A stretch of DNA of 64,000 bases from Obrimoposthia wandeli (GCA_977020255.1 CDROCS010000799.1:124001-188000), one strand, 5' to 3'; counted from the first letter of the stretch, positions 39,665-62,367 are shown. Made by a program: numbers and translations. The notes: generated by a model not told the origin, from the sequence alone.

Positions 39665-39745
<81 letters not shown>

Positions 39746-40651
39746 AGTCCATTTAAGACTACAATCAATGGAATTTTTTTTTTGGCTATAATAGATCAAT
39801 TTTCTAAATATATTGTATTAGAGTTAGTTCGAAATCAAGATGAAAATACTGTTATAAATATATTAGTAAATAAATGGATATTGAAGTTAGGTGCTCCGAA
39901 GAAAATTAACGTAGATAGAGGAAAATGTTTTGAATCCAAATTATTGTTTGACCTGGCGAAGAAATGTAATTTTACAATCAATTATTCAAGTCTATATCAC
40001 CACCAAACCAATGGTCAAGTAGAACGTCAATTTAGAACTATTAGAGACTGTATTGTATGTTGTTTAGAAGATAAGCTTTACAGAAATTGGGAAGAAGCAC
40101 TACCGAATATTGAATATACATTGAACTCTACAATGAAATCGTCAATTAACCAGAGTCCTGCTGAAATTGCTTTGGAAGAAAAATAAATAAATTTTTATTT
40201 GCAGACAGCAGTGATAGTAATCAAAATTGGGAGGATCACATGAAAGTAAAAAACAATTTCAGAAATTTTGAAATAGATGATAATGTTTTGGTAAAAGCTG
40301 ATGTTAGAAATAAACAAGATATGAGATATGAAGGACCATATAAAATCACAAAGAAATTACATAATAGAAGCTTTGAATTAACAGATGAAAATGAATAAAC
40401 GAAAATAAGAAATATTGACTGGCTAAAATCTTTAAGGTGAGGAGGATGTTAGGTAAATAATTATAATTATAATCTCACAATAAACTAATTAATTGAATGT
40501 TTGTACCTGTATGATTACATAACTAATTGTTTTCATCTTATTACGCAACTACCTACATTTCTCCACAGTGCGCTTTACTTAATAAAGCACACAGAACGAG
40601 AACGGCAGATTTGGTGTTTAATATAGTTTGAAGTATTATACAGACTTAACA
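36252..40651 (+). mobile_element. Degenerate Ty3/Gypsy element with PPT and 205-bp 3' LTR (40447-40651)
   Basis: Protease CLLDTGAKISVIS; RT KTAFSTKFGQYCFNRMPFGIAAAPSIFQ...LDDILI; RH LDTDA...LRTDHKAI; IN HHQTNGQVERQFRT. PPT AAGGTGAGGAGGA then TGTTAG...TTAACA. No 5' LTR seen. Confidence 0.92.
39669..39741. repeat. (TA)n microsatellite inside the Gypsy integrase
   Basis: Directly visible; interrupts the NEP..KLYID-ICSP motif. Confidence 0.97.
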
Positions 40652-42025: not shown

Positions 42026-42655
42026 CTTCGAGAAACCGGATTCTTTGATTGTTTATAGATGGTAATACCAAATGGATTGAATATATCAGATTTAACTCTT
42101 AGGTTATCATGACAATCTTGGGTAAAATCAATAAAAATGTATCCATGAGGAATGGTAATTGCGTATTGAAATGCATAAATCAGGTAATTTCTATTATTCG
42201 GGAATGCTTGCCTTGCAACAAAATCAATAACAGTTTGATCACGTGGATTCTTGAAGAGAACAAGGTAATTTACATTTAAATTACGATTTCTATGATTCCC
42301 ACCTTGGTGAAATATATTTTGTATAATGAAAATAACAGTTACTTCATGATGTCTTGCTATTTTAGTGAATAAATTATTGAAATCATTCTCTTTATTTGCT
42401 TCTTGATACAATACATCAATAACAATAAAATCGTGTCGCTGTAATTGCTCAGACCAATTTTCGTCAAATCTATTAATAACTTTTATATTTTTGATTTTCT
42501 TAAATTCTTTACTAATTCAACCTGCCTCTCCATCTTCTCGCTGATGCCAGTATATCTTATTAAACTTATATCTAAAGTATTTATTATTTTGTAGTAACTT
42601 ACAAATAAAAAGAGTTTTTCCCGCTACTTATTTTTAAATTATTTTTGAAGTCCAT
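42022..42655 (-). pseudogene. Polinton A32-like packaging ATPase (disrupted)
   Basis: GKTLFICKLL...KIYWHQ...FTKIARHHEVTVIFIIQNIFHQ...LFKNPRDQ; highly similar to 54466-55113. Confidence 0.9.
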
Positions 42656-42699
42656 ATTAAAATATTAATGTTGGGATAATGTTTATAAGACAAAGTTAC

Positions 42700-42980
42700 T
42701 TAAAATATTTTATTACAATACATACACCAACAAACAATAAAAAAACTCTTCTCCCAGAAAAAGCTCCCTTTCTCTTCTTTCATCTCTGCTTTCTTCTTAT
42801 TGTAGCCCAGAATGAGGAGATTGGCAGCCTTGTTGTGCATCATTTTTCTTGCATGCTCCTTCAGAGGTAGATCCGTTGCTTCGATGAGTTTCAATACATT
42901 TTTTTTTCTAAAAGATATTTCGAAATGAAGCTATTTACTGCCCGATCAACACCTTGCTTGAAATAATTGCGAGAAGACAT
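42700..42980 (-). pseudogene. Unknown Polinton ORF (frameshifted)
   Basis: MSSRNYFKQGVDRAVNSF... then LKLIEATDLPLKEHARKMM; preceded by TATAAACA. Confidence 0.4.
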
Positions 42981-43069
42981 GATAATGAAGTAAGAGTAAA
43001 ATGTTGACTGTTTATATACTATACAACTAAAAACTGATTGGATACTGAAAGAAACATAAGGAATACAAT

Positions 43070-43657
43070 TTATACATGATAATGATTAAAAATACGTATT
43101 TCATTAAGCAAAGTTTCATTAGGTGCTGTAATACTACGTTTAGCTTTAACAAGATTACTAGCAGTGCTAATGCCCATTGAATGAGATAAAAATGCAATAA
43201 CAATACAAACAGCATGTAAACTCCTATAATGACCACTTACTAGAACTTTCCCACCATTTTGATAGTTTCTTTAATTATATTATTAGTCAGTTTATAATAT
43301 TGTAATATTGTTTCTCCTAATTTTGTATTTACAAAGATAGAAGTATATTTTAATTTCTTATAAGATATCTTATATACTGCAGATGTATTGATTATGTGTG
43401 TGAATTCTGATTTTAGAAGCTCAGTTTCATCAATTGCATCTCGATAATTCTCGATATATAATTGATTTACTAAAATCTCGCTCATTGGAGTTCTGTTTAA
43501 TCTTTTCACACTAAGTTGGATAAATCTAGCTCTAAAAAAACTATCAAAAGGTGGGTCATATGATCAATATGAACCATAAAATCCAAAGCGTTTAAGAAAT
43601 CTGATCGTTTGTTTATTCTTCATTTTTCACCGCTGCTGTTTCATTAAGTTTCTCCAT
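43070..43657 (-). pseudogene. Dual-specificity phosphatase-like (pseudophosphatase) gene inside Polinton 2
   Basis: PMSEILVNQLYIENYRDAIDETELLKSEFTHIINTS, then (after a frameshift) NGGKVLVSGHYRSLHAVCIVIAFL...ASNLVKAKRSITAPNETLLNEI, the DUSP fold signature. The catalytic HCxxGxxRS is replaced by SGHYRSLHA. Confidence 0.8.
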
Positions 43658-43694
43658 TTTATTGATAAAAAATTTAAAGCTATAAAAATATTGT

Positions 43695-44263
43695 TTATAA
43701 CTCAAAAAACAAAGATAAATCTATTTTTAGTAACATTAAAACTTTTTGCAAGTAATGTCTTTGTTTAGGAAAGAAATAACACAAGTGTGAAGATGTATAT
43801 TAAATAAAATATATTCAATAAGATATTCATATCCTAGTGACTTAACGCCAAGTATCATCACCTTCCCGCTCGCAAAAATGTTCACGCATAGAGGATTGTA
43901 TTTGGCATATCATAGTCTCGGAAAAAGTTCTGGTTCGTAAACTGCGTCCAATCCCATACTCTTGCTCATCTTGCTCAGGTTTATCGGTTTTCCAAATTAG
44001 TACTGACGCTGGTTGATTGGATTCTCTCGATTTTGACATTGACATCTAGCATAGCTTTACAGTCCATTATTCTACATGTTCCTTAATTATATTAAAAATT
44101 AAATGTAAAATAAATTACCAGATTTGAAAATTATAATATAATAATCTTCACACTTGAGCCAGTACTGGTGCGGCTTCGAATTCCGAAATGGTAAGTGTTG
44201 AATACCGCTTACAACCATTTCCTTATAATTAATTTTCACCAATTTAATATTGTGAAGTAACAT
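43695..44263 (-). pseudogene. TBP-like gene, copy 2, with a 37-nt intron (44082-44118)
   Basis: KINYK...KPHQYWLKCEDYYIIIFKSG/TCRIMDC...RIQSTSV...AVYEPELFPRL*YAKYNPLCVNIFASGKVMILG; one frameshift and one stop. Confidence 0.88.
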
Positions 44264-45247
44264 TTTTGATTATTATAAACTGATTCTTATATATTATTTG
44301 AAAATCTATTTTTAGACCACGTAATCTCTTTTGTTAATTGCCTATGCTATGAAATGTAATTTTTCTCACTCGTCTAATGATAATTGTCTTGCAATATGGA
44401 CAAGAAATAAGTCGAGCTGAACATTTAATGCATGTATTTAAGTGTCCACATGGTAAAATGCTACTGAAATCATATATGTCAAGCAAACAATACATTCCAG
44501 ATTTGGTAAAAGATATTCAAGATAATTTATAACATGACTTGGTTCAGGTTTTATTTGTAAAGAACTTAAATCCGTTAGAAACTCATATATAGAATCATAT
44601 TTTTTACCAAATGTTTAAAACCTATTAATTAAAACGGCTTTGATTCTTTCATGGCTATAATCACGTTTTAACAAAACGATTTGTCGAGTTTTCATTTGAA
44701 CATCAATATCATCATTACTAATATGATATTCAACAAAACATCCATTCTTGATACCCATACTAGACGCTTTAGACTCTTGTGTATGAAGAATTCTCTCTGG
44801 GATAGTATCAATAAACTCAAGACGGGGCACTGCTTTCTGACAGAAACAACATCGATATGAATTATTTCAAATATAAACATGTGTAATAAAATGTCTCCGG
44901 ATCTTTATGATAAAAATGCTGACAATGTCCCTGATCAAATTTCCCCAAAAACAACTGCAGAAATTCCAAAAAATTGCAAAACTTCTCAAAAATCGATCAC
45001 CTTTGCACTGCGATATTTCCCGCGATGGAAATACCAAGCTTCAGGTATTTATATTTTGAGCTATTTTCTACCAGTTCTTAATCTATTTTTAGATCAATGG
45101 ATTTCCCACCCGATAATTGGAATACTGAAAAAAAGCTCTAACAGCTTTTATTATTGTAAACATTGAAAATTTAAAGTCAGAATTTCTGGAAATTTTTGTC
45201 CAACAGTTGTTTTATATAGAAATTATACAAAATGACACAAGATCCCG

Positions 45248-48960: not shown

Positions 48961-49684
48961 AGAGCAACATATACCCTTATGGTGTGGCAAGACACCTTTT
49001 ATGGTGTGACACCCTTATGGTGTGACACCCTTTAGGGGGAGGGGGAGGGGGGGGTCAAGTGATCTAGACTCCATCCTTCCTTGATATACTACTATGGTCG
49101 TCCATAGTTTAAAGGGTCAAGTGGTCTAGTCTCCACCCATCTTTTTGTGGTCTAGTCTCCACCCATCTTTTTGTGGTCTAGTCTCCACCCATCTTTTTGT
49201 GGTCTAGTCTCCACCCATCTTTTTGTGGTCTAGTCTCCACCCTTCTTTTAGTGATCTAGTCTCCACCCTTCTTTTTGTGGTCTAGTCTCCACCCTTCTTT
49301 TTGTGGTCTAGTCTCCACCCTTCTTTTTTGTAATCTAGTCCATAATGAAAATTTATGATAAAGTTCACACTTAACAATTAAGAATGTATGACGTAATCAT
49401 ACACACACTATTCTATGGGAAATTTATACTAAGTTCACTCTTATTAGTTAAGAATGTATTACGTAATCACACACATACTATTCTATGTGAAAATTTATGA
49501 TAAAGTTCACTCTTATCAGTTAAGGAATGTGGTTTTTAACACACACATACACTATTTTATGTGAAATTTAAACTAAAGTTCACTCTTATCAGTTAAGAAT
49601 GTATTACGTAATCACACACATACTATTCTATGTGAAAATTTAGATCAAAGTTTTTTCCCAGGCTTACACATCTAAAGAATTATG
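48961..49684 (+). repeat. Left terminal inverted repeat (16-bp, 24-bp and ~65-bp internal repeats)
   Basis: Reverse complement of 60293-61056; starts AGAG; contains a gtggtctagtctccacccatcttttt array and repeated TTACGTAA motifs. Confidence 0.95.
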
Positions 49685-49770
49685 TTAAAATTTGTATTAA
49701 ATCAAAAATTAAATCAAAAAAAAAATAAATAAGAAAGAAGTCAGAGAATAATACAAATTAAACACATTTA

Positions 49771-52700
49771 TTATGTTATTTCATAATGTCCATAAGCGCG
49801 GCTTCTATTTTTCTCGATCCAATAGCGCTTGTCATCTGATGAGCTGAGAGCAGTCTTTTGTATTATGATTGTGTATAGTTGATGATTTATTGTACCAAAC
49901 TTCTTTTGAGGTATAGTATATGCAATACCGTTTTTATACACGTCTAAATATGTTTGATGTACAACCGTTGAACCCTTAAGATTTACTCCTTTTGCTTTAT
50001 TATTTTCAAAGTCATCTTCAAACTTAAGTGAATAACATTTACAAAGTAAGAAAATCCATTCTTTATACATGCGTCCTTCCGATTCATCTTTAAATAAACC
50101 TATTTTACTATTAAATGTATTAGAATATAATGGATCATTCACATTATAATTTGACGTATCTAATAATCCATCTGCAATCATTTTTGGTAACAACTGTTTT
50201 CTTAAATTAACGTTTTTACATTCCAAAAAGAATGAATCGGTATCACCGGCAACTATATTAATTGAACAATTAAATAAATTACGATATATTTGCAAATCAT
50301 GATACTGAAGAGTATACATTCGTAATTTGCTAAGGTCTAGTACAGCTTGGCCTATATAATTTGGTCGATCGAGACAAATAAAATCTTTTCTTAATAAAAC
50401 TGCTATTAAATTATCATGAATTTCAATTGATCGTTGAAACATAGGTTTGCTAGTATATGTGATTAATTTTGTAGAACTAGTGCAGATGCGAAGATTCAAT
50501 CGTTTCTTAACATTTTCAACAGTCTTTCCATACAAACTAACATTTTTAAGTTTATAAAAATCTTTGTCACATTTATTCGTTGCTTGTGATCTCATTTCTG
50601 AATTATATTCTATATATTCTGCGAATATCTTAGCCTGAGAGAATTTTACTGCTCGATGAATAATTGTTACCACTGCTCCTAAACTAACATACATCTGCAA
50701 TAGTCTCCAATGAATAACATAATGACTTTTTGGCGAATGTGTCATTAAAAGTTTTTCAACTTTTTTACCAGGTGGACATTTCTTTTCTGGAGCTATAGGA
50801 AGATCATCTAAAATGTCATGAAGGTTTTCTGGTATTATCAAGTCTACTTCCATAAAATAACCATATTCAATATGTTCCATGTTTACATTTTTCATTTCAT
50901 GCAATATTTTGTTTAATTTTATATCATCAAGAATCCATTCAAAATCTCCTTTTGGTAAAGGTTGATCAAGAGCCCATCCATATAAATTATTAACATCTAT
51001 ATATAAAAGACTTGTTTCTTCATCAGCGACTACATGATGCTTATTGACAAATGTCATTCCTCCTCGTATACCCGAAGAAATCATGTTGTACATTTCAGGA
51101 TCCTGCATCAGTTCAACCTTATGTTTTAACATTTTTAGAGCACTTGCCCAACTCAACCCAGGAATGCTAAAAAGTTAAGTGGTTCTAAACCATCTTCACT
51201 GAGAGCTTTTCTTCTGAATGTTTGAAATACGTCAGCTAATAAATATACGTCAGTCTTTAAGTAAACTAACATATAATCCAACATATTTCTACAATTGGTT
51301 ATTTTCCAAACATCTTGTGCTTTTTGATATTCAGTGTCTGTGATTTTATCATTCCATTTTACTGGTAAACTTAACTTATTCTGGAGAACATTTAATGATG
51401 TAGCAAAATCATATGGGAATATTCCTTTGCCATCAATAAGTTTAGATGGAAAAACTGATCTTGTTAATGGAATAGTTGGTAATTTAGTTGCTAAATTTTC
51501 CAAAGATGATTGTAAAAATTGCAAAGAATCTATAAATCTCAGAGTTATTTGACCTAATCTTACAATCATGGCTTGAAACTTTTCCGTTGATTGTGGTATA
51601 ATATTTATATCCCAGTCAGTAAATTTATTCAATGCATGTTTTAAAATATGATGTAAATCATAACCTCTGAGATTATGAAACACAATAGGTAAAGTTGGAC
51701 GAAGTTTTCTTGATAAATTACATTCATTGCATGCAGGACCTAGATATTTACCAGTAAAGTGATCATGATCTTTAACATATTTTTCAGATGATTCGTGACA
51801 TAAATAACATTCATCGGCATTGCTAAATGTATGAATCTCTGCATTTGTTAAGGGAATCATTACGTTTTTAAGAGCATCTAAATACCATGGTAAAACCTTT
51901 TCTTTAGCCAAGTTCTCTATTGACTGAAGAAACTTAACTATGCAGTCATCACCAACATTATATTGATACTGGGTTTCAATTTCATCTGTACTCATAAATA
52001 ACATGCCAGATGCGACAGGCATATGCTTTTGATGATAACTCTCATCTGGTACTAATACAGATTCAAAATCAGCGTAAACGACATATTTCGGTGATATAGT
52101 TTTTGACCAATCATTGAATTTAACGTACTTATTCTTAGGCATAGTATACATTGTAGTGCTTTCTTGATTATAGTCACATAAAACTTTATGCTTTTCTAAT
52201 GACAAATCGGTTTTGAAACCATGTAAACACTTTTCACACCATTTTCTGCTAATTCTAGTCGTTTCAGTTCGAATATTTAATAGCCGGTTAAGACAAGTTA
52301 TTCCTATATAATGAAACCGATCCTTGGATTCTAGTAACAATAAATTAACTATAGTTCCTTCCTTTATTTTTGATTTGTATGCAATATCAATATAAGGATT
52401 CTTGATAACATCAGTTTTTGATTCTTTTTCACTTATCTCGTTGAATATAAATACATTTATTATTATACCAGGATTTTACCGTTCAAATTTTGATATATTT
52501 GATATTTTCATAGGCATGTCTTCGGAATTATATACAAAATCATTTAAAAATCTTTCATATTGGCTTGGTCTATTTCTATGTAATTCTATTTCATTATATT
52601 TAAGTATTGACAATATTGCATAAATAAAGCAAAGATTATCAGAGTTTTGAATATTGACGACTGCTTTAGATTTTGTAAGAGAATTTGATGATTTAATATA

Positions 52701-53495
52701 TGAATGACCTGACAATGCACAAATTTGACTATATTTAGTAACAATAAATGCATATTCAAGTATATTCATCAATTTCCAACCACTACCTTTTTCTGAATAT
52801 TCTTCAACTTTATTTTCCATTGTATCTTCCATTTCTGAAATTATAGCATGTGAAAAAATCATTGCTCGATGCGAAGCATACCATTCTTTAGTTTCTCCAT
52901 CATTCTTTTCAAACCTCATTCTAATGATGTATTGTATCTTTGCTTTTCCCATTAATTGCACTATTCTTTCTAGTTCGTTTAATAATGAAACTGGAACCTT
53001 AAGACTTACAAGATTGAGATGATCTACTTTCATGGATATCATTGAATAACTATTTTCTAATGATGTTTTAGTATGTATATTATCATTTATTTTACGTTTT
53101 CGTGACGTAATTGTAGGAGCTGAAATTACTATGTTTGATGGTACATTAATTATATCAGTTCTTTTGCTTAAAGCCGGTACTTTAAATAATTCTTTCTTAC
53201 TAACATTTTCATATGCTTTTAAATGACTAACATGTCGACTATAAAATAAGTTGTAATCAACATTTTCAGTGCTTAAACATTGTGGACATATGAAATAATT
53301 TATCTTTTTGTTTGAATAACCATAATATTTTTTCATTATATCATGACATTCTTGAGGATTAAAATGTGTATCCGAAAAACAAATATTTGAATAAGTTTTA
53401 CATATACTCATCTGATGATATGATTGATTTGATTGGACTGATTGGATATTGGTTGATTTGTAGACTGAATAAAAATAAAATATATATAAATACAA
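49771..53495 (-). CDS. Protein-primed family B DNA polymerase (one nonsense at 52476-52478, one -1 frameshift near 51170)
   Basis: Exo YADFES, FHNLRGYDLH, RFIDS, YLKTDVYLLADVF; EndoVII DHDHFTG...CNECN; pol YIDVNNLYGWA, KLKNVSLYGKT, AGDTDS, KAKGV. The first ATG in the open frame is MSICK (~53411). Confidence 0.95.
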
Positions 53496-53517
53496 TAATT
53501 TAATTATTTTACTTACA

Positions 53518-53982
53518 ATGTTAACAAATATTAATTATAAAGGAATTTGCTTAGATGATGTATCCAAATTAAAATTTCGAATACGACCAGAACAATACGT
53601 TTATAAAGCCAAAGATTATACAATACTTATTTTTAGAAATAAGAAATGCAGGATTATGGGATGTAAGGTACCTATTAAAAATATTTCTTACCCTTTAAGA
53701 ATAAATATACTTGGTATTCAATCAATTACGATATGTGAAAATTTAGAACAAAGTATCAATCTATTTATATTATCGAATGTATTACGTAATGCATGTTCAT
53801 TTGACCCTGAGGTTTTCCCAGGCTTAAGATTAAATATTTTCAATCCATTGTGTGTAAATATTTTCACATCTGGAAAGGTCGTAATTTTAGGTCTTAGAAA
53901 TTTAGATTTTCAAGATCAAGTTAACGATATCATGACATACATTAAAAAAAAATTATATAAATACGAAACAATTTCTAATTAA
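53518..53982 (+). CDS. TATA-binding-protein-like (TBP fold, both repeats), intact 154 aa
   Basis: TNINY...ILIFRNKKCRIMG (repeat 1; cf. QNIV...ALIFSSGKMVCTG) and IQS...FDPEVFPGLRL...VNIFTSGKVVILG (repeat 2; cf. YEPELFPGLIY...LIFVSGKVVLTG). Confidence 0.9.
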   Translation: MLTNINYKGICLDDVSKLKFRIRPEQYVYKAKDYTILIFRNKKCRIMGCKVPIKNISYPLRINILGIQSITICENLEQSINLFILSNVLRNACSFDPEVFPGLRLNIFNPLCVNIFTSGKVVILGLRNLDFQDQVNDIMTYIKKKLYKYETISN

Positions 53983-53997
53983 ATCATTCAATTTTAA

Positions 53998-54384
53998 ATG
54001 TCTTATAAATCCGTTCAAAAGTATTACGAGTATGATATGTTCTTCTTGGCATCTGCATGGATTCAACCAATGACTATGCCAGTGACATTATCAAAAACTT
54101 TGTACAATTACCGAGTCTCTGATTTTGATGACAAAGACATTCAACAATTCAATGAAATCGTCAAATATTTGAAAATTGATGTTGAACTAGAGAATGAGGG
54201 TATATTTATGCGCGGAGATAAGTGTAAATTTTATGATTGTGGTGGAACAAAGATTTCGGATATTCAAGAAGATGGAAGAAGTTGGATGCTCGAAATAAAA
54301 TTTCTCGGATATAAAATAAATAAACAGAATGAAACAACTCTCATCTGGAGGATTCATACAGCGACCGAATATTTTGATGTTTAA
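53998..54384 (+). CDS. Unknown 128-aa Polinton protein, possibly OB-fold ssDNA-binding
   Basis: Intact ATG ORF with a beta-rich C-terminal pattern (KFYD...WMLEIKFLGYKI...TLIWRIH). The fold is inference only. Confidence 0.55.
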   Translation: MSYKSVQKYYEYDMFFLASAWIQPMTMPVTLSKTLYNYRVSDFDDKDIQQFNEIVKYLKIDVELENEGIFMRGDKCKFYDCGGTKISDIQEDGRSWMLEIKFLGYKINKQNETTLIWRIHTATEYFDV

Positions 54385-54465
54385 TAAATATTTAATAAAA
54401 TGTTGTTATTGTTATAAACATGTACTTATTCTGATATATTTATTTTATATTAATATTTATATATA

Positions 54466-55113
54466 ATGTTATTAACAAACATTTCAACTTTTCAAGTAGT
54501 AGGACCAAGTGGTAGTGGAAAAACTTTATTTGTTTGTAAATTATTAAATTCAAAAATGTTTAAAAATAAATTTAATAAAATATATTAGCATCAAGGTGGT
54601 GATGGAGAAGCTGGTTTAACAAACCAAGAATTTAATAAAATAAAAAACATTAAGATTATTAACGGTTTTGATGAAAATTGGACGACAAGACTCGTAAAAG
54701 GTGATGTAATTGTTATTGATGACTTATATCAAGAGGCTAACAAAGAATCTGATTTTAATGATTTATTTACAAAAATTGCAAGACATAGAGAAGTTACTGT
54801 AATTTTTATAACCCAAAATTTATTTCATCAAGGAGGAAATCATCGTACTCGTAATCTTAATGTACATTATTTGATTTTATTCAAAAATCCTAGAGATCAA
54901 ACAGTGATAGATTTTATTGCTCGTCAAGCATTTCCTCATAACAAGAGTTATTTAATTGATGCGTTTCATGATGCTACATCTTTACCACATGGTTATTTAT
55001 TTTTAAATTTTACTCAATCATGTCCTGATGATTTAAGAATTGTTACTGATATATTTAACCGTAATGGTATTACAGTCTATAAACAAATAAATAATAATAA
55101 TGTTTTAAAATAA
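54466..55113 (+). CDS. A32-like packaging ATPase with one premature TAG (54586-54588; TGG in the paralog)
   Basis: Walker A VVGPSGSGKT, Walker B IVIDD, ARHREV..ITQN, LFKNPRD. Confidence 0.93.
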
Positions 55114-55114
55114 A

Positions 55115-55528
55115 ATGAATTTTAAAAAGAGTATTCTTAAACATAGTAAAAGGACAGATAAAGATGAAGTTAAAAAATTAATAAATACTGTATTATATGA
55201 TCGTAATAATATTGAATTTTCAAAAAGTTTACCTTATTTTAAAACCTTAATTGACGTACCAAAAACGAATAAAATGAAAATGTTGAAATCATTTCCAATT
55301 TATGTAGTTGATGATTTAATAAAAATTTTAAATAAAATAATTTATGGTAAAATTAAACCTGATGATAATATTTTAAAATATAAAAATTCATTAATAAATT
55401 TAGCAAATTCACGTGGTAAAATTAATAAAAGAAACATTATTTATAATCAAAATGGCGGATTCATATTGGCCCTACTGCCCGCTTTAGCATCAGTAATAGC
55501 TAGTGTTATATCTTCAAGATGGGGATAG
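55115..55528 (+). CDS. pX-like virion protein with adenain cleavage site QNGG/F and C-terminal amphipathic peptide
   Basis: ...YNQNGGFILALLPALASVIASVISSRWG; position between ATPase and INT. Confidence 0.7.
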   Translation: MNFKKSILKHSKRTDKDEVKKLINTVLYDRNNIEFSKSLPYFKTLIDVPKTNKMKMLKSFPIYVVDDLIKILNKIIYGKIKPDDNILKYKNSLINLANSRGKINKRNIIYNQNGGFILALLPALASVIASVISSRWG

Positions 55529-55672
55529 TTGTCTTAATAACGAAAATAATTACATTCATTCGTTTTATACAAACATATAAACAGATTAAAATATATTTAA
55601 CTTTTATAATAATGGGGATAAACAATACAAAGTTGTCTAACTTATTTATAAATTTTAATTCTTCATGCTGCA

Positions 55673-56697
55673 ATGGAAAAGATTTGGAACAATCCAGAAG
55701 ATCCAGACGGTTATACAGGGTTAGAAAAATTGACAAAAAGAGTCAAACAATCAAAAACAAACACACAAAAATGGTTAAGAAATGAATTATCATATAGTCT
55801 GAATAAACCTTTAAGACGTAAATTCCCTACTAGATCATATAAAACTAATGGTATTAATTCGTTATGGCAAATGGATTTAATGGAAATGATTCCTTATTCT
55901 TCAGTAAATAACGGATTCAAGTATATTTTAACTTGTATTGATGTATTTAGTCGTTTTGCAAGGGCAGTTGGTGTTAAATCAAAATCAGGTATTGATTTAT
56001 TACATGCAATAGAATCTTTAATTGTTGATGATGTACCAGTAAATATCCAAACCGATGAAGGTAAAGAAATTTTAATTCACATGTTAAGAAATTATTTAAA
56101 ACTGAAAATATCAATCATTATTCAGTATATTCTCAATATAAAGCTGCAGTAGTTGAAAGATTTAATAGAACGTTAAGAGAACGGTTAAAGAAATATTTTA
56201 CTAAACAAGGTAATAAGAAATGGGTGAATGTATTACCAAAAATTATTTATGCTTATAATAATTCTAAACATAGAGGTTTAGATGGTTTAAAACCTGTAGA
56301 TGTAAATAATAAAAATGAATTTGATATTTTGTTGAAACAAAATCTAAAAGAAAAGAAACTTAAATCTAAATATAAAATTGATGATTATGTTCGAATATCA
56401 AAAATAAGTACAAGTCCATTTATTAAAAATTTTAATCAAAATTGGAGTGATGAGGTTTTTCAAATTCATGATATTAATTATAAACAAAATCCAATAATGT
56501 ATATTTTAAAAGATATTGATAACGTCATCATCAAAGGAAAATTTTATAAACAAGAGTTACAATTAATTGATAAACCTAAACTATATCGAATACAAGAAAT
56601 TTTAGAAACTAAAGGTCGTGGTAAGAATAAACAATATTACGTAAAGTGGCACGGATACTCTGAACCTTCTTGGATATTTGCTTCTCAAATTGAATAA
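55673..56697 (+). CDS. Retroviral-type (rve) integrase with chromodomain; one -1 frameshift at ~56072
   Basis: WQMDL...CIDVFSR...QTDEGKE / KAAVVERFNRTL; C-terminal YRIQEILE...YYVKWHGYSEPSW. Confidence 0.95.
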
Positions 56698-57695
56698 TGT
56701 CAAAATATATTATTTTACCTAGTAATAGTTGTCCAAGTACTCAACCTAACAATACAGCCAATCAATTTACTGTAGATTGGGAAAACTCTCTAAATTTAGT
56801 TGCCTTGACTGAATTTGTATTTAATTTTACTCCTTTAACAATACAAACTAATTCAAAAATACTTTATAAAACGGAAAAGATAGAAATGAAAACTTTCGAT
56901 GTATCTTTTGCAATTTTAAATGGATTAATTTTTAATAATTTAAATACTGTTTTCAATTTCAAAATTACAAAGGGTCAAAAATTAGAAATAAGTACAATTA
57001 ACAGTATTCATCGAATGTTGTTAAAATTCGAAACTTTAGAAGAATCAAAAATTATAGGTTTTAATGAAATACAAAAAATTTCTAGTCATGTTATAACAAG
57101 TGATGAAATTGTTGACATAAATAAAAATATTCATGCTAAAATGAGAATTACAATTTATTATTTAGCTGAATATGAATACGAAATAAAATTTAATCAAAAT
57201 TATTTGATACAAGATAGTACTTCATTATGTAATATTATAGCCAGTAAATGTAATGAAATTTTTAAAAGCTGTAATATAGATTCAGACGGATTATTTGATA
57301 TTTTATTAAAGAAAAATGTAAAATCAGTTTTATTTGACGAAAAACTTGCATCTTTATTAGGTTTTAATAATGTTTTCTTTGAGAAACGAATTAAAGGTTT
57401 TCAAAAACCAACACTTTCTAGCTCATATAATCAAATGTATATTTATACTAGTTTAACAGATTCTGTCTTAGTAGGATCTGATTATGTTCCACTGTTAAAG
57501 TCTATTTGGTTAAAATCATTAAAATATCGATATGGAGATGTAGTAAATGTTAAAATTGATAATCCAATGTACTTGAAAATGAGAGATTCAAGTATTAATA
57601 GAATCGAGGTAAATATACGTGATGATTCTGGTAATTTAATTCCATTTTCATATGGAGCAAAAACTAGTTTAACTCTTCATTTACGTAAAGTATAA
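56697..57695 (+). CDS. Minor capsid protein (penton)
   Basis: IILPSNS...NNTANQFTV...VALTEF N-terminus and MYIYTSL...VG...PLLK...MYL...I..IEVNIRDDSG.LIPF C-terminus, typical of Polinton pentons. Confidence 0.85.
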   Translation: MSKYIILPSNSCPSTQPNNTANQFTVDWENSLNLVALTEFVFNFTPLTIQTNSKILYKTEKIEMKTFDVSFAILNGLIFNNLNTVFNFKITKGQKLEISTINSIHRMLLKFETLEESKIIGFNEIQKISSHVITSDEIVDINKNIHAKMRITIYYLAEYEYEIKFNQNYLIQDSTSLCNIIASKCNEIFKSCNIDSDGLFDILLKKNVKSVLFDEKLASLLGFNNVFFEKRIKGFQKPTLSSSYNQMYIYTSLTDSVLVGSDYVPLLKSIWLKSLKYRYGDVVNVKIDNPMYLKMRDSSINRIEVNIRDDSGNLIPFSYGAKTSLTLHLRKV

Positions 57696-57734
57696 ACAAT
57701 ATAAATATATTTAAAATATAAATATATATATAAA

Positions 57735-58138
57735 ATGAATACATCAATTATAAAATTTTATAGCAAAAGTCAACAGGGCGGTGAACTTCCCTATTTCATT
57801 GGTAAACAATATGGATCTGGTTGGTATCAAACTATTTCTAGATTAGCTATTCCATTGTTAAAAAAGTTGGTTTATCAGCAGCTACAAGTGCTGCCAATGT
57901 AATTGGTGAAACGCTAGGAACAGCGTTCACAAATCCCAAACACATAATTTCATCTCTCAAAGAAAATACAATCAAAGAAGTCAAAACTTTGATTCCAAAA
58001 TTAAAAAATAATGCTGTTGATAGTTTAAATAAAGTCGCAAATTGTGTTGAACAAAATGGAAAGGGTCTTAAACGTAAAAGAAATAATTTAAATAGTATAA
58101 ACAAACGTCTTAAAGGTACTATTTTCCAAAATGACTAG
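57735..58138 (+). CDS. Virion core/cement-like protein with QxGxG protease sites (frameshift near 57862)
   Basis: QQGGELPYFIGKQYGSGW...RLAIPLLKKVG...QNGKGLKRKR. Confidence 0.7.
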
Positions 58139-59351
58139 TATAAAATCTGAATTGTGTATTTTCGATAGACCACTACCTCAAGTAGTGATTGAAAATTCAT
58201 GTTTTGAAGAAATATTTCCAATCAATTCAATTACTGGAAAAAATTTAAATGACATAGAATTTAATATTCATGCATCTGAAGAAGATTATCTGGATTTGAA
58301 TGATACTTTGTTAAATATTAAATTAAAAGTTGTAAATGAAGATGGTACTGATTTAATGAAAGATAGTGATGTAACTCCAGAGAATTACATGTTTCAAACT
58401 TTGTTTAGAGATGTTATTCTAACACTTAATAATGTAAAGGTTGAAGGAGGAAATGGAACGTATACTCATAAGGCTATATTCGATACTCTTTTGAATTTTA
58501 GTAGTGATACCAAGTATACTAACCTTGAATGTAGTGGGTATGATGATGAAGCAGAAAATCGTAAACAATGGATTAGTGAATCTAAAATATTTTCATTATG
58601 TAATTCAATTAGATTAGATTTCTTCGAACAACCAAAATATTTGATTCCAGGGATTAATGTTCATTTGAGATTTATGAGAAATCAGCATAATTTTTCGCTC
58701 TATTCAGAAACTTCAAAATCAATTATTCAAATTCTAGATGCTAGATTGTATGTTAGAAGAGTAAAAGTTGATTCTTCAGTAATGATTGGACATCAGTTAG
58801 GTTTGCAAAGTCAGAATGCAGTTTACCCAATTAGAAAAACTCAGTTAGTAACATATTCAATTCCTCAGGGTTCTTTGGAACTTAATAAAGATCAAATATT
58901 CGGAGACTATCGTTTACCCAAGTTCATTTTGATTGCTTTCAAAGATACACCTCAGGGTGGTAAGGAATACAAAGTTAAATCTTCTACATTCAATACATTT
59001 AATGTTTCAACAATATCATTAGCTAGAAATACAGATTATCGAGAAACTTATAATCTAGATAATAACAATTTTTCATTAGCATATATGCAGTCAATTATTC
59101 GAAATATGAATATTTTAGATAAAAACGTGAATAATGGTATCAGATTTTCTGATTTTAAATCAGGAAGTTCAATTTTCACTTTTCTATTAGCACCAGATTT
59201 TGATATAAACACTACTCAAGTGCCTAAAACTGGTAATTTAAGACTTGAAATTAGATTTAATTCTCCTTTGACCGTTCCAACAAGTGTTTTGATTTACGGA
59301 ATATTTGATTCCGAAATTCAGATTACGAAAAATAAAACTGTGATTGTATGA
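58131..59351 (+). CDS. Major capsid protein (double jelly-roll), intact 406 aa
   Basis: KSELCIFD...Q...E..P...IEF.I....YLDLNDTLL...LF.D..L.LN...FFEQPKYLIPG...LRF.R...A.YP pattern of Polinton MCPs. Confidence 0.9.
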   Translation: MTSIKSELCIFDRPLPQVVIENSCFEEIFPINSITGKNLNDIEFNIHASEEDYLDLNDTLLNIKLKVVNEDGTDLMKDSDVTPENYMFQTLFRDVILTLNNVKVEGGNGTYTHKAIFDTLLNFSSDTKYTNLECSGYDDEAENRKQWISESKIFSLCNSIRLDFFEQPKYLIPGINVHLRFMRNQHNFSLYSETSKSIIQILDARLYVRRVKVDSSVMIGHQLGLQSQNAVYPIRKTQLVTYSIPQGSLELNKDQIFGDYRLPKFILIAFKDTPQGGKEYKVKSSTFNTFNVSTISLARNTDYRETYNLDNNNFSLAYMQSIIRNMNILDKNVNNGIRFSDFKSGSSIFTFLLAPDFDINTTQVPKTGNLRLEIRFNSPLTVPTSVLIYGIFDSEIQITKNKTVIV

Positions 59352-59724
59352 AGTAAGCTTATTTTATATTATATTCTTTATTAAAATTAGTACTTTAGAA
59401 ATTCATAAATCCGGAAAAATATTATTGAATAATAAATTTAATGGAGTATATTCATTGGATAAAATTCCATCATTAAAACCCGGAGGTTACATTATCAATA
59501 CTCATACTTCAAATCTACCAGGCGAACATTGGATAGCAATATTCGTTGACAGATTCAAGATTCGAGTGTTTGATCCTTTTGGATTCTATTATCCTGCAAA
59601 GTTGGTGTCTACACTTGAAAAAGAAAACATTCCAGTCTACTATAATCGAGTTAAATGTCAGAATCCATTAACTAAAAACTGCGGACCTCTGAGTCTTTTA
59701 TGGTTGAAACTTCAACACAAATAA
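59348..59724 (+). CDS. Adenain-like cysteine protease with a 38-nt intron (59353-59390)
   Basis: INT...PGEHWIAI...FDPFG...CQNPLTKNCG (His/Asp/Gln/Cys). Splicing gives an ATG start, MNTLEIH. Confidence 0.92.
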
Positions 59725-59778
59725 TTTTAAGTATAAACAAATATATCATTTTAGTATTTCATTTTATTTTATTTTCAA

Positions 59779-60231
59779 ATGGCTTTTATTGATTTAGAAT
59801 GTTTTATTGATAATAATGGAGAATATATTCCAAAGGAATTATGTATAATGTATGTGAATGATATGACTTGTCCATTTCATTACGTGTTTAAAAATCAAAT
59901 ACCATGGAGTAGTTTATCATTTACAGTTAAAAGAAAAAATCTATATTTGATAAATCATCATCATCAGTTATCCTGGTTTGAAGGTGAAAGCTCTGATATT
60001 CATATTGATGATGTTGAAACAATATTCTATGTTATGGATTCTATTGATGGAAAGAAAATTAATTTAGTGAAACGAATGTTTCCAAATTTGAGAATTGTGA
60101 ATTATAATAAAAGTTTCAAAAATTTAAAGAAAATGCCAAAAAATATTCGATGTCCGTTTAGAAAACACGGAAAACATTGTGCTTATTTGAAATGTTTTTC
60201 TCTATGTATTGATTATGTAAATTGTATATAA
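59779..60231 (+). CDS. DEDD/DnaQ-like nuclease-fold protein with C-terminal Cys/His cluster
   Basis: FIDLECF...PKEL...PW..L...HHHQLSWFEG...CPFRKHGKHCAYLKC. Confidence 0.7.
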   Translation: MAFIDLECFIDNNGEYIPKELCIMYVNDMTCPFHYVFKNQIPWSSLSFTVKRKNLYLINHHHQLSWFEGESSDIHIDDVETIFYVMDSIDGKKINLVKRMFPNLRIVNYNKSFKNLKKMPKNIRCPFRKHGKHCAYLKCFSLCIDYVNCI

Positions 60232-60292
60232 ATATATTTATTAAGGATATTTTATTTTAATATATAATTTATGTTATTTAAATAAATTTTAC

Positions 60293-61056
60293 CATAATTC
60301 TTTAGATGTGTAAGCCTGGGAAAAAAAACTTTGATCTAAATTTTCACATAGAATAGTATGTGTGTGATTACGTAATACATTCTTAACTGATAAGAGTGAA
60401 CTTTAGTTTAAATTTTACATAAAATAGTGTATGTGTGTGTTAAAAACCACATTCCTTAACTGATAAGAGTGAACTTTAGTTTAAATTTCACATAAAATAG
60501 TGTATGTGTGTGTTAAAAACCACATTCCTTAACTGATAAGAGTGAACTTTATCATAAATTTTCACATAGAATAGTATGTGTGTGTGATTACGTAATACAT
60601 TCTTAATTGTTAAGTGTGAACTTTATCATAAATTTTCATTATGGACTAGATTACAAAAAAGAAGGGTGGAGACTAGACCACAAAAAGAAGGGTGGAGACT
60701 AGACCACAAAAAGAAGGGTGGAGACTAGACCACAAAAAGAAGGGTGGAGACTAGATCACTAAAAGAAGGGTGGAGACTAGACCACAAAAAGATGGGTGGA
60801 GACTAGACCACAAAAAGATGGGTGGAGACTAGACCACAAAAAGATGGGTGGAGACTAGACCACAAAAAGATGGGTGGAGACTAGACCACAAAAAGATGGG
60901 TGGAGACTAGACCACTTGACCCTTTAAACTATGGACGACCATAGTAGTATATCAAGGAAGGATGGAGTCTAGATCACTTGACCCCCCCCTCCCCCTCCCC
61001 CTAAAGGGTGTCACACCATAAAAGGTGTCTTGCCACACCATAAGGGTATATGTTGC
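60293..61056 (-). repeat. Right terminal inverted repeat
   Basis: Reverse complement of the left TIR, with different minisatellite copy numbers. Confidence 0.95.
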
Positions 61057-62367
61057 CTCACCAGAGGTGAGGCAACATATACCCTTATGGTGTGGCAAGA
61101 CATCTTTTATGGTGTGACATCCTTATGGAGTGACACCCTTTAGGGGGGGGGGGTCAAGTGGTCTAGACTCCATCCTTCCACCTACTATCCTAGTTACTAG
61201 AAAATGTATAATTTATAATCGGTTTATGATTCAGAATGCTTTAAATTTTTTTATCCGAGATTTACAAACCCGATAATCAGTTACCCGGATTAAAGAATAT
61301 CCAGTGACCTCTATTTCAGAATAATCTTATGATTTATATGCCAACTTACAATAAATTTCTTAAGCAGAATATATATGCAAAAATATTTTAAAAGAAAATA
61401 AAACAAACAATAAAAACTAATGATATATAATAAATTTAAAAAATATTAATATATTTTTCATAAATGAAATATAATTTAAAATCCTTTTAAAATAAAAAAA
61501 ATATTTATAACGGGCAAATTTACTAAAAGTGCCAAAATTAGTATAACAATATAATTTCGAGTTCTTCCTAATTTATAAATACTAACAGTAGTAATATAAT
61601 AATTGTTCGAATCATTCAAGGTTATTCCCAAAAAGTACATATGTTAAAAACGATTTTTCTTCTTTTTGAAAACGGAATATTTTACTTTTGGTACAGGAAT
61701 ATATTAGATGTAAGTTTATTTTTACGTAAATAAAGTTTATTTTCATTTCAGATTAATTTTCAAAATTGCACGATTCTCGGGATAATATATGTATATGTTA
61801 AGTATATGCATGAATATTTTAAAACTAATAATGTATTTATTTGGCTATTATTTATCGTTTTTACCTGTCAATTTGCTATAATATTTTACAATAATCTAAA
61901 CTGATGAGATTTAGGTTTGTGTTAGAAAGTTCAGAAAAACAAGACAGTTGATAAATTATATTGAAAAATAGACAAATTCATAGCAAAATCAATGTCGTCA
62001 TCTAGCAACATTCCCGAATTTACATCATAAAAAAGCATCAATTCAACTGCATAAGTGAGGAGTTGTGAATTTCTTATACTATTGACTAAGTTAAGTAATT
62101 TAGCTATATTAAATTAATAGAAATTTCCATTGAAATAAGTTTGGACAATTGTTTAAAACAATAACACCCACATTATAGAAATATTGGTCCTCATTTATGC
62201 TGTTTCAACATACAGATAATGATGTGGCAGTTACACAAAGGGGGTTTGGAAGGCAAAATTCATAGGTAAACGTACCTCGGTATAAGCGCATAATTTGCCT
62301 CAGAACCGAGCTAGTATCTACATAGGCAATAGGTGATTATGTCAAAACACAGTTGTCGCGAGACACC

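Follow-up and report, generated by a model that had tools for sequence, protein, structure and literature searches.

We analysed a 64,000-nt window of Obrimoposthia wandeli DNA (GCA_977020255.1 CDROCS010000799.1:124001-188000), in which a 12.1-kb Polinton-type virus-like transposon (element A) encodes its own reduced TATA-binding protein (TBP)-like protein, and nearly all its putative particle-building genes are preceded by the same unusual TATA variant, TATAAACA. The pairing of protein and motif is conserved across a large clade of related elements and suggests, on sequence evidence alone, a built-in early-to-late transcription switch. A second, decayed element (element B) in the window carries four copies of the motif and a broken TBP-like gene. 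The earlier note on this sequence had reported the motif and proposed such a switch. Its observation was confirmed and turned out to be stronger than originally described.

The motif and the genes of element A

All positions and motif-to-ATG distances given in the earlier note were found to be correct, including those of the canonical box TATAAATA; one copy of TATAAACA, inside the capsid ORF, had been missed (Table 1). The window contains 20 hits of TATAAACA against 9.7 expected, and 0 of 100 shuffled sequences reached 20. In the 5.4-kb morphogenesis module (54385-59780) there are nine copies on the plus strand, mostly 35-53 nt before ATGs, against 0.64 expected (P = 3e-8), and the whole of element A has none on the minus strand. 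Element B has four against 0.15 expected, while the rest of the window sits at background, 0.074 per kb per strand. The note's rough estimate of one chance hit per 7 kb is about right.

Some statements of the note required correction. The element described as intact has five reading-frame interruptions in four genes: two in the polymerase gene, one in-frame stop in the ATPase gene, and one frame change each in the integrase and core genes. The motif at 55576 had been assigned to the integrase, 97 nt before its ATG, but it also lies 36 nt before a conserved small ORF. The labels major capsid protein (MCP), penton, core and DEDD nuclease could not be verified by sequence searches, and we use capsid and core below only as putative names. 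The statement that the TBP-like protein has lost the first Phe of its N-terminal repeat is right at the family level, because that column is not conserved, but the protein of the window may keep a Tyr there under one of two possible registers.

Table 1. Features of elements A and B (positions are those of the whole window).
Position	Strand	Feature	Supporting observations
48964..49700		Left terminal inverted repeat of element A, holding 26-bp tandem repeats	Inverted repeats with 60277-61056 at 98-100% complementarity
49771..53411	-	Protein-primed family B DNA polymerase gene with an endonuclease VII insert; reading frame in three pieces (2 interruptions)	Pfam DNA_pol_B_2 E = 1e-14 and Endonuclease_7 E = 2e-6 on the middle piece; related loci L008, L009 and L010 also have separate ORFs for the N-terminal part, and L010 also for the second split, so one or both interruptions may be natural
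53432..53492		Divergent 'early-type' promoter region between the polymerase and TBP-like genes (predicted)	Three ATTGG (CCAAT) boxes at 53432-53452 and TATAAATA at 53485-53492; CCAAT or ATTGG plus a canonical TATA also precede the TBP-like gene in related loci L008, L009, L012 and L040
53518..53982	+	Mini-TBP gene (154 aa): predicted helix-less N-terminal half followed by a complete C-terminal TBP repeat	Pfam, PDB and structure-model matches to TBP (see text)
53998..54384	+	ORF128, preceded by TATAAATA at 53956-53963	No family hit; single-sequence model unusable (pLDDT 39)
54413..54420	+	TATAAACA, 53 nt before the ATPase ATG	Intergenic
54466..55113	+	Packaging ATPase gene (A32/FtsK-like); 1 in-frame stop	Walker A piece hits Pox_A32 weakly; intact orthologues in L008-L013 carry faint Pox_A32 hits; one of 13 relatives has a stop at the homologous codon
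55078..55085	+	TATAAACA, 37 nt before the ATG of the 137-aa ORF	Inside the ATPase 3' end
55115..55528	+	137-aa ORF ('pX')	No family hit
55576..55583	+	TATAAACA, 36 nt before a conserved small ORF (ATG at 55612) that overlaps the integrase start	The same small ORF overlaps the integrase start out of frame in intact relatives L008 and L009
55673..56697	+	Integrase gene (rve core plus C-terminal chromodomain); 1 frame interruption	Pfam rve E = 1e-8 and Chromo E = 0.003 on the two pieces
56479..56552	+	Two TATAAACA copies inside the integrase gene (starting at 56479 and 56545), 218 and 152 nt before the 332-aa ORF	Orthologues of the 332-aa ORF have the motif within 110 nt in 10 of 20 loci
56697..57695	+	332-aa ORF ('penton' in the note)	Label not supported by the sequence searches
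57691..57698	+	TATAAACA, 44 nt before the core-gene ATG	Orthologues have it in 29 of 40 loci
57735..58138	+	Small basic 'core' gene; 1 frame interruption	Its 3' end holds the motif of the capsid gene
58096..58103	+	TATAAACA, 35 nt before the capsid-gene ATG	Present at this place in nearly all relatives down to about 38% capsid identity
58131..59351	+	406-aa conserved protein taken to be the major capsid protein; intact	168 homologues at 39-60% identity; no PDB, Pfam or PHROG hit
59204..59211	+	TATAAACA inside the capsid ORF, 145 nt before the protease ATG	Not listed in the note
59349..59724	+	Adenain-like cysteine protease gene, starting with ATGAA followed by a short intron; no TATAAACA of its own within 110 nt	Pfam Peptidase_C5 E = 0.003; intron shared by 14 of 45 loci
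59732..59739	+	TATAAACA, 47 nt before ORF150	Orthologues have it in 5 of 18 loci
59779..60231	+	ORF150 ('DEDD nuclease' in the note)	No significant hit
60277..61056		Right terminal inverted repeat of element A	
42050..43699	-	Four TATAAACA copies (starting at 42057, 42687, 43016 and 43699) in element B	32, 32, 36 and 42 nt before ATGs, respectively
43739..44269	-	TBP-like gene of element B, broken (at least 2 interruptions)	Two separate profile hits, E = 2e-14 and 5e-10

Conservation of the motif across related elements

To learn whether the motif is conserved, we examined 76 non-redundant related loci, where TATAAACA is the top upstream 8-mer (86 of 452 upstream windows against 9 expected), with 186 copies on the capsid-gene strand and 6 on the opposite strand. 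As the loci are related, these counts overstate the number of independent events. Among the TATAAA+NN words, CA scores 170 against at most 43 for any other pair, and every single-base variant is at background, and therefore the specific unit is 8 bp, the size of a TBP footprint. The distance from motif to ATG has its mode at 30-50 nt, with a second, unexplained cluster near 90-110 nt, and no conserved initiator was seen downstream of the motif. Before the capsid gene the motif lies inside the upstream ORF in one fixed frame at 24 of 25 sites, and it therefore always uses the ATA Ile and AAC Asn codons, although these make up only 31% and 28% of the Ile and Asn codons in the capsid genes, which points to selection on the DNA.

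The motif discriminates between gene classes. It precedes the capsid gene in 27 of 42 loci, the core gene in 29 of 40 and the gene of the 332-aa protein in 10 of 20, but the TBP-like gene in 0 of 14, the polymerase gene in 0 of 4 and the protease gene in 0 of 31 (Fisher P = 1e-6 for TBP-like against capsid plus core). The TBP-like and accessory genes carry instead canonical TATA boxes, often with CCAAT boxes, and where the TBP-like gene sits among the morphogenesis genes on the same strand (related loci L012, L040 and L043) it still has a canonical TATA. A shared 34-50 nt intron of the form GTRAG..YAG at the start of the protease gene shows nuclear, spliceosome-coupled expression.

A family of reduced TBP-like proteins

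The TBP-like assignment was confirmed by Pfam TBP (E = 4e-12 for residues 67-145), by PDB TBPs (E down to 5e-14), and by an AF2 model (pLDDT 93, pTM 0.83) whose top 44 Foldseek matches in the PDB are all TBPs (TM 0.67-0.74). The protein belongs to an unnamed family of about 150 aa, termed here mini-TBP, with 16 close and at least 89 end-to-end members. In the predicted structure a complete C-terminal TBP repeat follows an N-terminal half that lacks both helices and is reduced to a bare beta-sheet; the C-terminal half matches the TBP C-repeat better than the N-repeat (45 against 26 bits). Over 89 family members, the conserved residue was found in 88 at Arg45, 89 at Met47, 88 at Phe39, 88 at Phe100, 89 at Phe116, 87 at Glu98 and 80 at Glu96, while the column of the first Phe of the N-terminal half is variable; the register of the internal repeats was derived separately. 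The near-invariant Arg and Met stand where the cellular TBPs that we inspected have Val and Thr, and three of the four central polar DNA-contact positions of cellular TBP are changed. Both DNA-kinking Phe residues of the C-terminal repeat are kept, as is the acidic stirrup that cellular TBP uses to dock TFIIB.

The gene was found in every long relative, including those with about 30% capsid identity. As no relative lacking the gene was recovered for contrast, the association of protein and motif cannot be separated from shared ancestry. Weak co-variation was seen: related loci L070 and L071, whose TBP-like protein lacks the Arg, lack promoter-placed TATAAACA, while L077 keeps the Arg and has 3 of 4 copies before ORFs.

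A possible early-to-late switch

The interpretation offered in the earlier note, that host TBP drives early genes and the element's own TBP then activates late virion genes, was supported only in part. The existence of two conserved promoter-like classes, the presence of the protein in every long relative, its canonical C-terminal repeat and its rebuilt N-terminal half all agree with it, and in known TBP-DNA structures the N-terminal half covers the 3' part of the box, which is where the motif departs from the consensus. Literature searches found no description of such a system in Polintons.

The explanation that we favor, although we consider it only about as likely as not, is that the element has two classes of RNA polymerase II promoters. 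The first, comprising the TBP-like gene, the polymerase and accessory genes, would be read from ordinary TATA boxes by the host's own initiation factors. The second, comprising the ATPase, the small ORFs, the core gene, the capsid gene and the gene after the protease, carries TATAAACA, about 30-55 nt before the ATG. In this view the mini-TBP would sit on the box with its C-terminal repeat on TATA and its rebuilt N-terminal half on the AACA end, recruit TFIIB and host RNA polymerase II, and so switch on the particle-building genes once enough of it has accumulated. A C at position 7 of the box was used as a TATA-eliminating mutation in a yeast promoter (PMC3514670), so the motif is a poor canonical box. 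Our analysis establishes the motif with its position, strand and gene-class specificity and its deep conservation, the predicted fold and the conservation pattern of the protein, the co-occurrence of the two, and the spliceosomal introns. That the motif is a core promoter with transcription starting about 30 nt downstream, that the mini-TBP binds it, that TFIIB is recruited, that host TBP serves the first class, and that the classes are temporally early and late, are inferences. The loss of the N-terminal helices and of polar contacts also leaves room for a protein that does not bind DNA as TBP does, or that acts as an inhibitor or decoy.

Alternative explanations

A less likely but still possible alternative is that TATAAACA is the conserved promoter of the morphogenesis genes but is read by host factors, either host TBP on TATAAA or a Forkhead-type factor on ATAAACA. 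The mini-TBP may then do something else, such as sequestering TFIIB or other TBP partners to damp host or early transcription, repressing the late boxes during latency, or binding the element's termini for replication. The motif indeed holds both cores, TATAAA alone can be bound by cellular TBP, protein and motif are correlated only by shared descent, the reduced N-terminal half fits a decoy or altered function, and the conserved stirrup would also suit a TFIIB trap. However, all eight positions are constrained, including T1, and neither GTAAACA, the preferred Forkhead core (48 against 30), nor any single-base variant is enriched. The fixed C at position 7 also speaks against this reading, the three conserved Phe residues and the near-invariant Arg and Met on the predicted DNA face indicate selection for DNA binding, and the protein's own gene avoids the motif.

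It is very unlikely that the motif is an RNA-processing or termination signal, such as a polyadenylation signal for the upstream gene. TATAAA is a weak variant of the poly(A) signal, the genes are tightly packed, so that each copy also lies near the end of an upstream gene, and 116 of 170 copies lie inside an upstream ORF. Yet many copies lie 40-120 nt before the stop codon of that ORF (median 46), so cleavage 10-30 nt downstream would cut off the reading frame. Moreover, the first gene of the module has the motif in an intergenic spacer, the distance to the next ATG is tighter than that to the upstream stop, and T1 and the CA at positions 7-8 are constrained, which a poly(A) hexamer does not require.

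A by-product of composition, coding constraint or shared ancestry without regulatory role is the least likely reading, since, although the module is AT-rich (about 26% GC), many copies overlap coding sequence and the loci are related, the local excess is 14-fold over a Markov expectation, the strand ratio is 186 to 6 while other TATAAA+NN words differ only about 1.6-fold between strands, the motif persists in relatives of 39-42% GC such as L013 and L014 and at capsid identities near 40%, where silent sites should be saturated, codon choice is fixed, and the motif is absent before three gene families.

Comparison with known systems

The idea is not without precedent. The closest known analogue is the late-gene pre-initiation complex of beta- and gammaherpesviruses, in which a DNA virus that depends on host RNA polymerase II encodes a TBP-like protein (EBV BcRF1, KSHV ORF24, HCMV UL87) and its late structural genes carry a non-canonical TATA variant, the TATT box, at the core promoter (PMC4893493, PMC7162547, PMC4922670, PMC12529657). 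The fold search with the mini-TBP model also retrieved BcRF1, UL87 and U58 proteins, weakly (E = 7e-4 to 8e-3). The herpesvirus proteins are large (about 580-1000 aa in these hits), only distantly TBP-like, contact the polymerase directly and need five viral partners, whereas the mini-TBP is a 150-aa bona fide TBP homologue with a conserved TFIIB-type stirrup, no partner genes were recognised, and the box differs at positions 7-8 rather than position 4.

The best viral fold matches of the model are the TBP-like proteins of nucleocytoplasmic large DNA viruses (ASFV B263R, mimivirus-type and phycodnavirus TBPs), and for ASFV a link between the viral TBP and an AT-rich late promoter motif has been discussed (PMC7163114, PMC5825884). 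Those viruses carry their own multisubunit RNA polymerase and transcribe in the cytoplasm, and their proteins are full-length or longer, while the Polinton element has no such polymerase genes and has spliceosomal introns. Cellular TBP paralogues (TRF1, TRF2/TBPL1, TBP2/TBPL2) also direct polymerase II to promoter sets with a different core element, but they keep two complete repeats, whereas the mini-TBP has lost both helices of the N-terminal one and is encoded by a mobile element.

Among Polinton-related viruses, TBP-like and TRAF-like genes have been noticed in viruses of non-animal eukaryotes: 'TBP' appears as a gene label on maps of midsize eukaryotic linear dsDNA (MELD) viruses with adintovirus-like polymerases (Starrett et al. 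2021, PMC8502044, Fig. 5 legend), without family definition, structure, promoter analysis or link to late genes. These genomes may or may not belong to the clade studied here, in which L010 also carries a TRAF/MATH gene next to the TBP-like gene. Virophages and polinton-like viruses carry one short conserved motif before most genes (10.1101/068312, PMC8547959), but it is read by the transcription machinery of their giant viruses, while here the proposed reader is encoded by the element itself and would work with host polymerase II. Finally, the adenovirus major late promoter is a TATA-dependent late unit serving the structural genes, where downstream genes such as the protease may be served by splicing from an upstream promoter; consistent with this, the protease gene here has no motif of its own but has an intron at its start. 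Adenovirus, however, uses host TBP on a canonical TATAAAA box with activation by viral IVa2 and L4 proteins, and has no viral TBP and a single promoter rather than one per gene.

Organization of the element and its surroundings

Element A is a 12.1-kb insertion that carries several of the features expected of Polinton/Maverick elements. It is bounded by terminal inverted repeats of about 740-780 bp at 98-100% identity, which contain 26-bp tandem repeats, and terminal inverted repeats were also present in the related contigs L008, L009 and L013 (L008-L014 are seven contigs encoding capsid homologues, fetched by exact protein look-up). On the minus strand lies a protein-primed family B DNA polymerase gene with an endonuclease VII insert (PF03175 E = 1e-14), a gene found also in L008, L009, L010 and L014. 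On the plus strand we found, in order, a 154-aa TBP-like gene, ORF128, a packaging ATPase, a 137-aa ORF, an integrase of the retroviral (rve) type (PF00665 E = 1e-8) with a weak chromodomain hit, a 332-aa ORF, a small basic 'core' gene, a 406-aa conserved protein taken to be the capsid protein, an adenain-like protease and ORF150. The matches of the ATPase and the protease were all below the curated cut-offs (Pox_A32 E = 0.002 on the Walker A piece and Peptidase_C5 E = 0.003), as were the precomputed faint hits to these two families in relatives. The 406-aa and 332-aa proteins and the 150-aa protein of ORF150 had no match in PDB, Pfam or PHROG sequence searches. Polinton/Maverick elements encode double and single jelly-roll capsid proteins; for the 406-aa and 332-aa proteins these labels rest on size, order and conservation, and the names 'penton' and 'DEDD nuclease', which the earlier note had given to the 332-aa ORF and ORF150, remain putative. 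An Rfam search found no RNA genes in the window, and a presumed host ORF at 31783-32163 on the minus strand gave one unnamed hit.

The earlier note had described this element as intact, but it is not fully so: the polymerase frame has two interruptions, the ATPase one in-frame stop, the integrase one frame change and the core gene one frame change. The nearly identical terminal repeats show a recent insertion, so assembly errors in this AT-rich sequence are an alternative to real damage. The polymerase frame is split at comparable points in several relatives, where the N-terminal part of about 300-355 aa is a separate ORF in L008, L009 and L010, and L010 has also a second split. This suggests that one or both interruptions are natural, and they may be introns, separate genes or a programmed frame change rather than damage. 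The in-frame stop of the ATPase is matched by a stop at the homologous codon in L001, a relative whose TBP-like protein is only about 45% identical, while the other 12 of the 13 relatives compared have a sense codon there. Coincidence, shared descent or a recoding signal could each account for it.

A second, decayed copy, element B, is cut by an LTR retrotransposon, and its TBP-like gene is in at least three pieces. Fragments of LTR-retrotransposon pol genes (reverse transcriptase, integrase) flank and interrupt it, so the region is a repeat-rich nest. Accessory genes sit next to the TBP-like gene: L010 has a TRAF/MATH protein (E = 5e-27), element B and L001 have a RING finger (E = 5e-8), and element B has a weak dual-specificity phosphatase hit (E = 0.009). 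These are candidate host-signalling or ubiquitin modulators.

Coordinates of the features in the window and, where indicated, in related loci
Feature	Position	Strand
Element A	about 48964-61056	
Polymerase gene, split frame (compared with L008, L009, L010)	49771-53411	-
Three ATTGG boxes before the TBP-like gene	53432-53452	
Late module	54385-59780	+
ATPase with in-frame stop	54466-55113; L001 4933-5559	
Conserved small ORF overlapping the integrase start	55612-55785; L008 about 4950-5014; L009 about 7510-7572	
Additional copy of TATAAACA	59204	
Protease start and intron	59349-59410; L008, L009, L010, L016, L019, L021, L026, L029, L030, L032, L036, L096	
59-nt perfect-arm palindrome abutting the right terminus, as if a second terminus were joined head to head; arrays of a 26-bp unit in the terminal repeats	61004-61124 and 49121-49328 / 60656-60915	
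Element B	about 41-48 kb	-
Accessory genes next to the TBP-like gene	L010 3952-4941; 44334-44495 and 43240-43509; L001 448-900	- (window)
Fragments of LTR-retrotransposon pol genes	36800-40400 and 13400-22700	
Small terminal ORFs with a shared upstream block	L008 274-1651 and 15332-15454; L009 3006-3598	
Loci with TTAAGC before many ORFs	L070 and L071, whole loci	

The motif in the window and in related loci

The observation of the earlier note, that TATAAACA recurs at short distances before packaging and structural genes of the element, held: every coordinate and distance that it gave was confirmed, and only one further copy, at 59204, had been missed. Across the whole window there were 20 hits, more than in any of 100 shuffled sequences, and they were concentrated in the two elements.

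Copies of TATAAACA observed and expected by region
Region	Observed	Expected
Late module, + strand	9	0.64 (first-order Markov; P = 3e-8)
Whole element A, minus strand	0	1.15
Element B, 1.75 kb	4	0.15
Rest of window	0.074 per kb per strand	background

To examine whether the motif is conserved we turned to the 168 homologues of the capsid protein, nearly all from metagenomes, and analyzed the seven contigs L008-L014 together with 80 loci obtained by a metagenome scan with a capsid alignment. The motif lies 28-90 nt before the capsid ATG in nearly every relative down to about 38% capsid identity, including elements of 39-42% GC. In an unsupervised 8-mer count over 76 loci (361 kb), made non-redundant at 90% nucleotide identity, TATAAACA ranked first in the -90 to -15 windows, with 86 of 452 windows against 9 expected from its own overall frequency. 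Strand use was 186 to 6. Among TATAAA+NN words on the capsid strand, CA scored 170 and the next best 43, and each single-base variant of the 8-mer was at background. The flanks were weak, with C at -1 in 44% of sites and A at +9 in 63%. The specific unit is therefore exactly 8 bp, which is the size of a TBP footprint. No conserved initiator was found at fixed spacing after the motif.

Before the capsid gene the motif sits inside the upstream ORF in one fixed frame at 24 of 25 sites, and therefore always uses the ATA Ile and AAC Asn codons, which make up only 31% and 28% of the Ile and Asn codons in the capsid genes. This calculation is conditioned on sites that have the motif, but these cover about 45 of 53 relatives at 38% identity or above, so the bias is small, although the relatedness of the loci remains a caveat. 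Distances between the motif and the ATG showed a second cluster at 90-110 nt (31 sites), mostly before core-gene orthologues, where either the true start codons or an unannotated small ORF lie in between. In the window a conserved small ORF, which begins with Met-Gly and holds a Cys-Cys pair about 19 residues in, starts 36 nt after TATAAACA and overlaps the integrase start out of frame, also in relatives with intact integrase. It could encode an acylated small protein or be an upstream exon.

Other readings of the motif were considered and ranked lower. The Forkhead core is the 7-bp RYAAAYA, with GTAAACA as the commonest strong form, and ATAAACA within the motif fits this core. However, GTAAACA was not enriched (48 against 30) and a T before the core was strongly required (170 against 13-33 for the other bases), which fits an 8-bp TATA-type unit better. 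A poly(A) signal and a composition artefact were judged unlikely.

Two putative promoter classes

We next asked which gene families are preceded by the motif. The TBP-like genes differed from the capsid plus core genes (Fisher P = 1e-6), and none of the TBP-like, polymerase or protease genes counted had the motif.

Loci with TATAAACA within 110 nt upstream, by gene family (capsid denotes the 406-aa protein family)
Gene family	Loci with the motif
Capsid	27/42
Core	29/40
332-aa ORF	10/20
ORF150	5/18
TBP-like	0/14
Polymerase N-terminal ORF	0/4
Protease	0/31

TBP-like genes carry canonical TATA boxes instead, often 20-30 nt after a CCAAT or ATTGG box. This was seen in the window, with its three ATTGG boxes, and in L008, L009, L012 and the relative L040, and it holds also where the TBP-like gene sits downstream of the late genes on the same strand (L012, L040 and the relative L043). 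Small terminal ORFs of L008 and L009 each carry the same upstream block of about 25 nt followed by a canonical TATA box, which looks like a repeated cassette of this canonical promoter class (class 1) near the element ends. The protease starts with ATGAA (ATGRA for the loci listed in the table) followed by a 34-50 nt GTRAG..YAG intron directly after the capsid stop, an arrangement shared by 14 of 45 loci. This shows spliceosomal, hence nuclear, expression, and suggests that the protease may be served from the capsid promoter. Two Logan contigs of about 1.4 and 3.1 kb (L095 and L096), examined as possible transcripts marking a start site, contain both the motif and the intron, so they are DNA.

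The TBP-like protein

The 154-aa protein matches the TBP repeat of Pfam (PF00352) at E = 4.2e-12, with 46 bits against a cut-off of 22.9, over residues 67-145 only, and TBPs of the PDB were reached at E = 5e-14, or 9e-21 with the family profile. It does not have the two complete tandem repeats, each strand-helix-four strands-helix, that form the saddle of TBP. The AF2 model, built on 17 sequences (pLDDT 93, pTM 0.83), shows four strands without any helix in residues 1-60, followed by one complete repeat. The whole predicted chain still superposes on TBPs over 165-180 columns, and its top 44 PDB fold matches are all TBPs, aligned over both halves at TM 0.67-0.74. In the viral library the model matched giant-virus TBPs, an ASFV B263R homologue and, weakly, herpesvirus BcRF1, UL87 and U58. 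The complete repeat resembles the C-terminal repeat of eukaryotic TBP more than the N-terminal one (45 against 26 bits), and its residues 96-101 align with the identical stretch of the acidic stirrup in the printed cellular TBP C-repeats.

A profile search of 1.84 billion cluster representatives found 53 proteins at E <= 1e-30, and together with the close homologues 89 proteins matched the profile end to end, with a median length of 161 aa. These define an unnamed family of reduced TBPs, here called mini-TBP, with at least 89 end-to-end members among cluster representatives.

Residue conservation over the 89 end-to-end family members
Position (window numbering)	Count
Phe39	88
Arg45	88
Met47	89
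Ser/Thr69	89
Glu96	80
Glu98	87
Phe100	88
Phe116	89

Of the two pairs of DNA-kinking phenylalanines of TBP, three residues are thus conserved, while the column that would hold the first Phe of the N-half is variable under either possible alignment register. By the internal repeat alignment and the alignments to cellular TBPs, Arg45 and Met47 occupy positions that are Val and Thr in both repeats of the printed cellular TBPs. In crystal structures of TBP with DNA and with TFIIB, those Val and Thr positions face the DNA, the N-terminal repeat covers the 3' half of the box and the C-terminal stirrup docks TFIIB.

A TBP-like ORF was present in every locus long enough to judge (13 of 13), including L070, L071 and L077, distant relatives at about 30% capsid identity. 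IMG/VR scans with the TBP alignment, the capsid protein and a polymerase piece returned only distant giant-virus or archaeal TBPs, or nothing, and thus no TBP-lacking relative for contrast. ORF128, the gene next to the TBP-like gene, was considered as a possible partner factor, but its model from a single sequence reached only pLDDT 39 and is unusable, and it had no family hits.

Interpretation

The simplest model joining these facts has three steps. Host factors would transcribe the class-1 genes, including the mini-TBP; the mini-TBP would bind TATAAACA, with its conserved C-half on TATA and its rebuilt N-half on the divergent end; and through the conserved stirrup it would then bring TFIIB and RNA polymerase II to the late genes. 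The earlier note had inferred that host TBP drives early genes and that the element's own TBP then activates late virion genes, and this interpretation is supported only in part. What our analysis establishes is the motif with its position, strand and gene-class preference, the conservation of the protein and its predicted fold, their joint occurrence and the protease intron, whereas binding to the box, recruitment of TFIIB and polymerase, the start sites and the timing are inferred, and protein and motif are inherited together. A C at position 7 of the box was used as a TATA-eliminating change in a yeast promoter (PMC3514670). In addition, L070 and L071, whose TBP-like protein lacks the N-half Arg, lack promoter-placed TATAAACA, whereas L077, which keeps the Arg, has 3 of 4 copies before ORFs, although these are only two lineages. 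L070 and L071 have instead TTAAGC 22-97 nt before many ORFs (10 on the + strand of L070 against about 5 expected), which may be a different promoter word that co-varies with the protein. We consider the full model about as likely as not, and the narrower claim, that TATAAACA is the conserved core-promoter element of the morphogenesis genes, quite likely.

A more far-reaching possibility, which we hold tentatively and as slightly less likely than not, is that the mini-TBP is a minimal, sequence-specific core-promoter factor of one and a half TBP repeats, which reads TATAAACA through a rebuilt N-terminal half (Arg and Met in place of Val and Thr, one Phe fewer) and recruits TFIIB and host RNA polymerase II without the surfaces that cellular regulators use on TBP. 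This would give a whole clade of Polinton-type viruses a self-encoded early-to-late switch, and would be the first defined transcription programme for Polintons and a natural example of how far the TBP fold can be reduced and retargeted. How Polintons/Mavericks express their genes, and what decides between silent residence in a genome and particle production, is essentially unknown. The finding supplies a concrete, conserved cis element for the particle-building genes and a candidate trans factor encoded by the same element, both shared by a large and mostly metagenomic clade, which makes the question testable. The motif itself is a practical marker for annotating genes and strand orientation in such elements.

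Comparison with known systems

Starrett et al. 2021 label 'TBP' and 'TRAF' genes on maps of Polinton-related viruses of non-animal eukaryotes, without further comment (PMC8502044). Full-text literature searches on TATA-binding proteins and promoter motifs in Polintons/Mavericks, and on TATAAACA as a promoter, found no description of this protein family, this motif or their pairing. ASFV and other giant viruses encode TBP homologues for their own polymerases (PMC7163114). Beta- and gammaherpesviruses use a viral TBP-like protein and a TATT box for late genes (PMC4893493, PMC7162547, PMC12529657), so that the pairing of a viral TBP with a variant TATA box is in itself already known. The herpesvirus pre-initiation complex has a large viral TBP of the BcRF1/ORF24/UL87 family with five viral partner proteins. 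The present system is an analogue of this complex and not a member of it: the predicted fold gave only weak hits to BcRF1, UL87 and U58 (TM 0.34-0.35), no homologues of the five viral partner proteins were seen in the Pfam scans, and the box is TATAAACA and not TATT. If the model is correct, it would extend the strategy known from herpesviruses to a very different and much smaller virus-like lineage.
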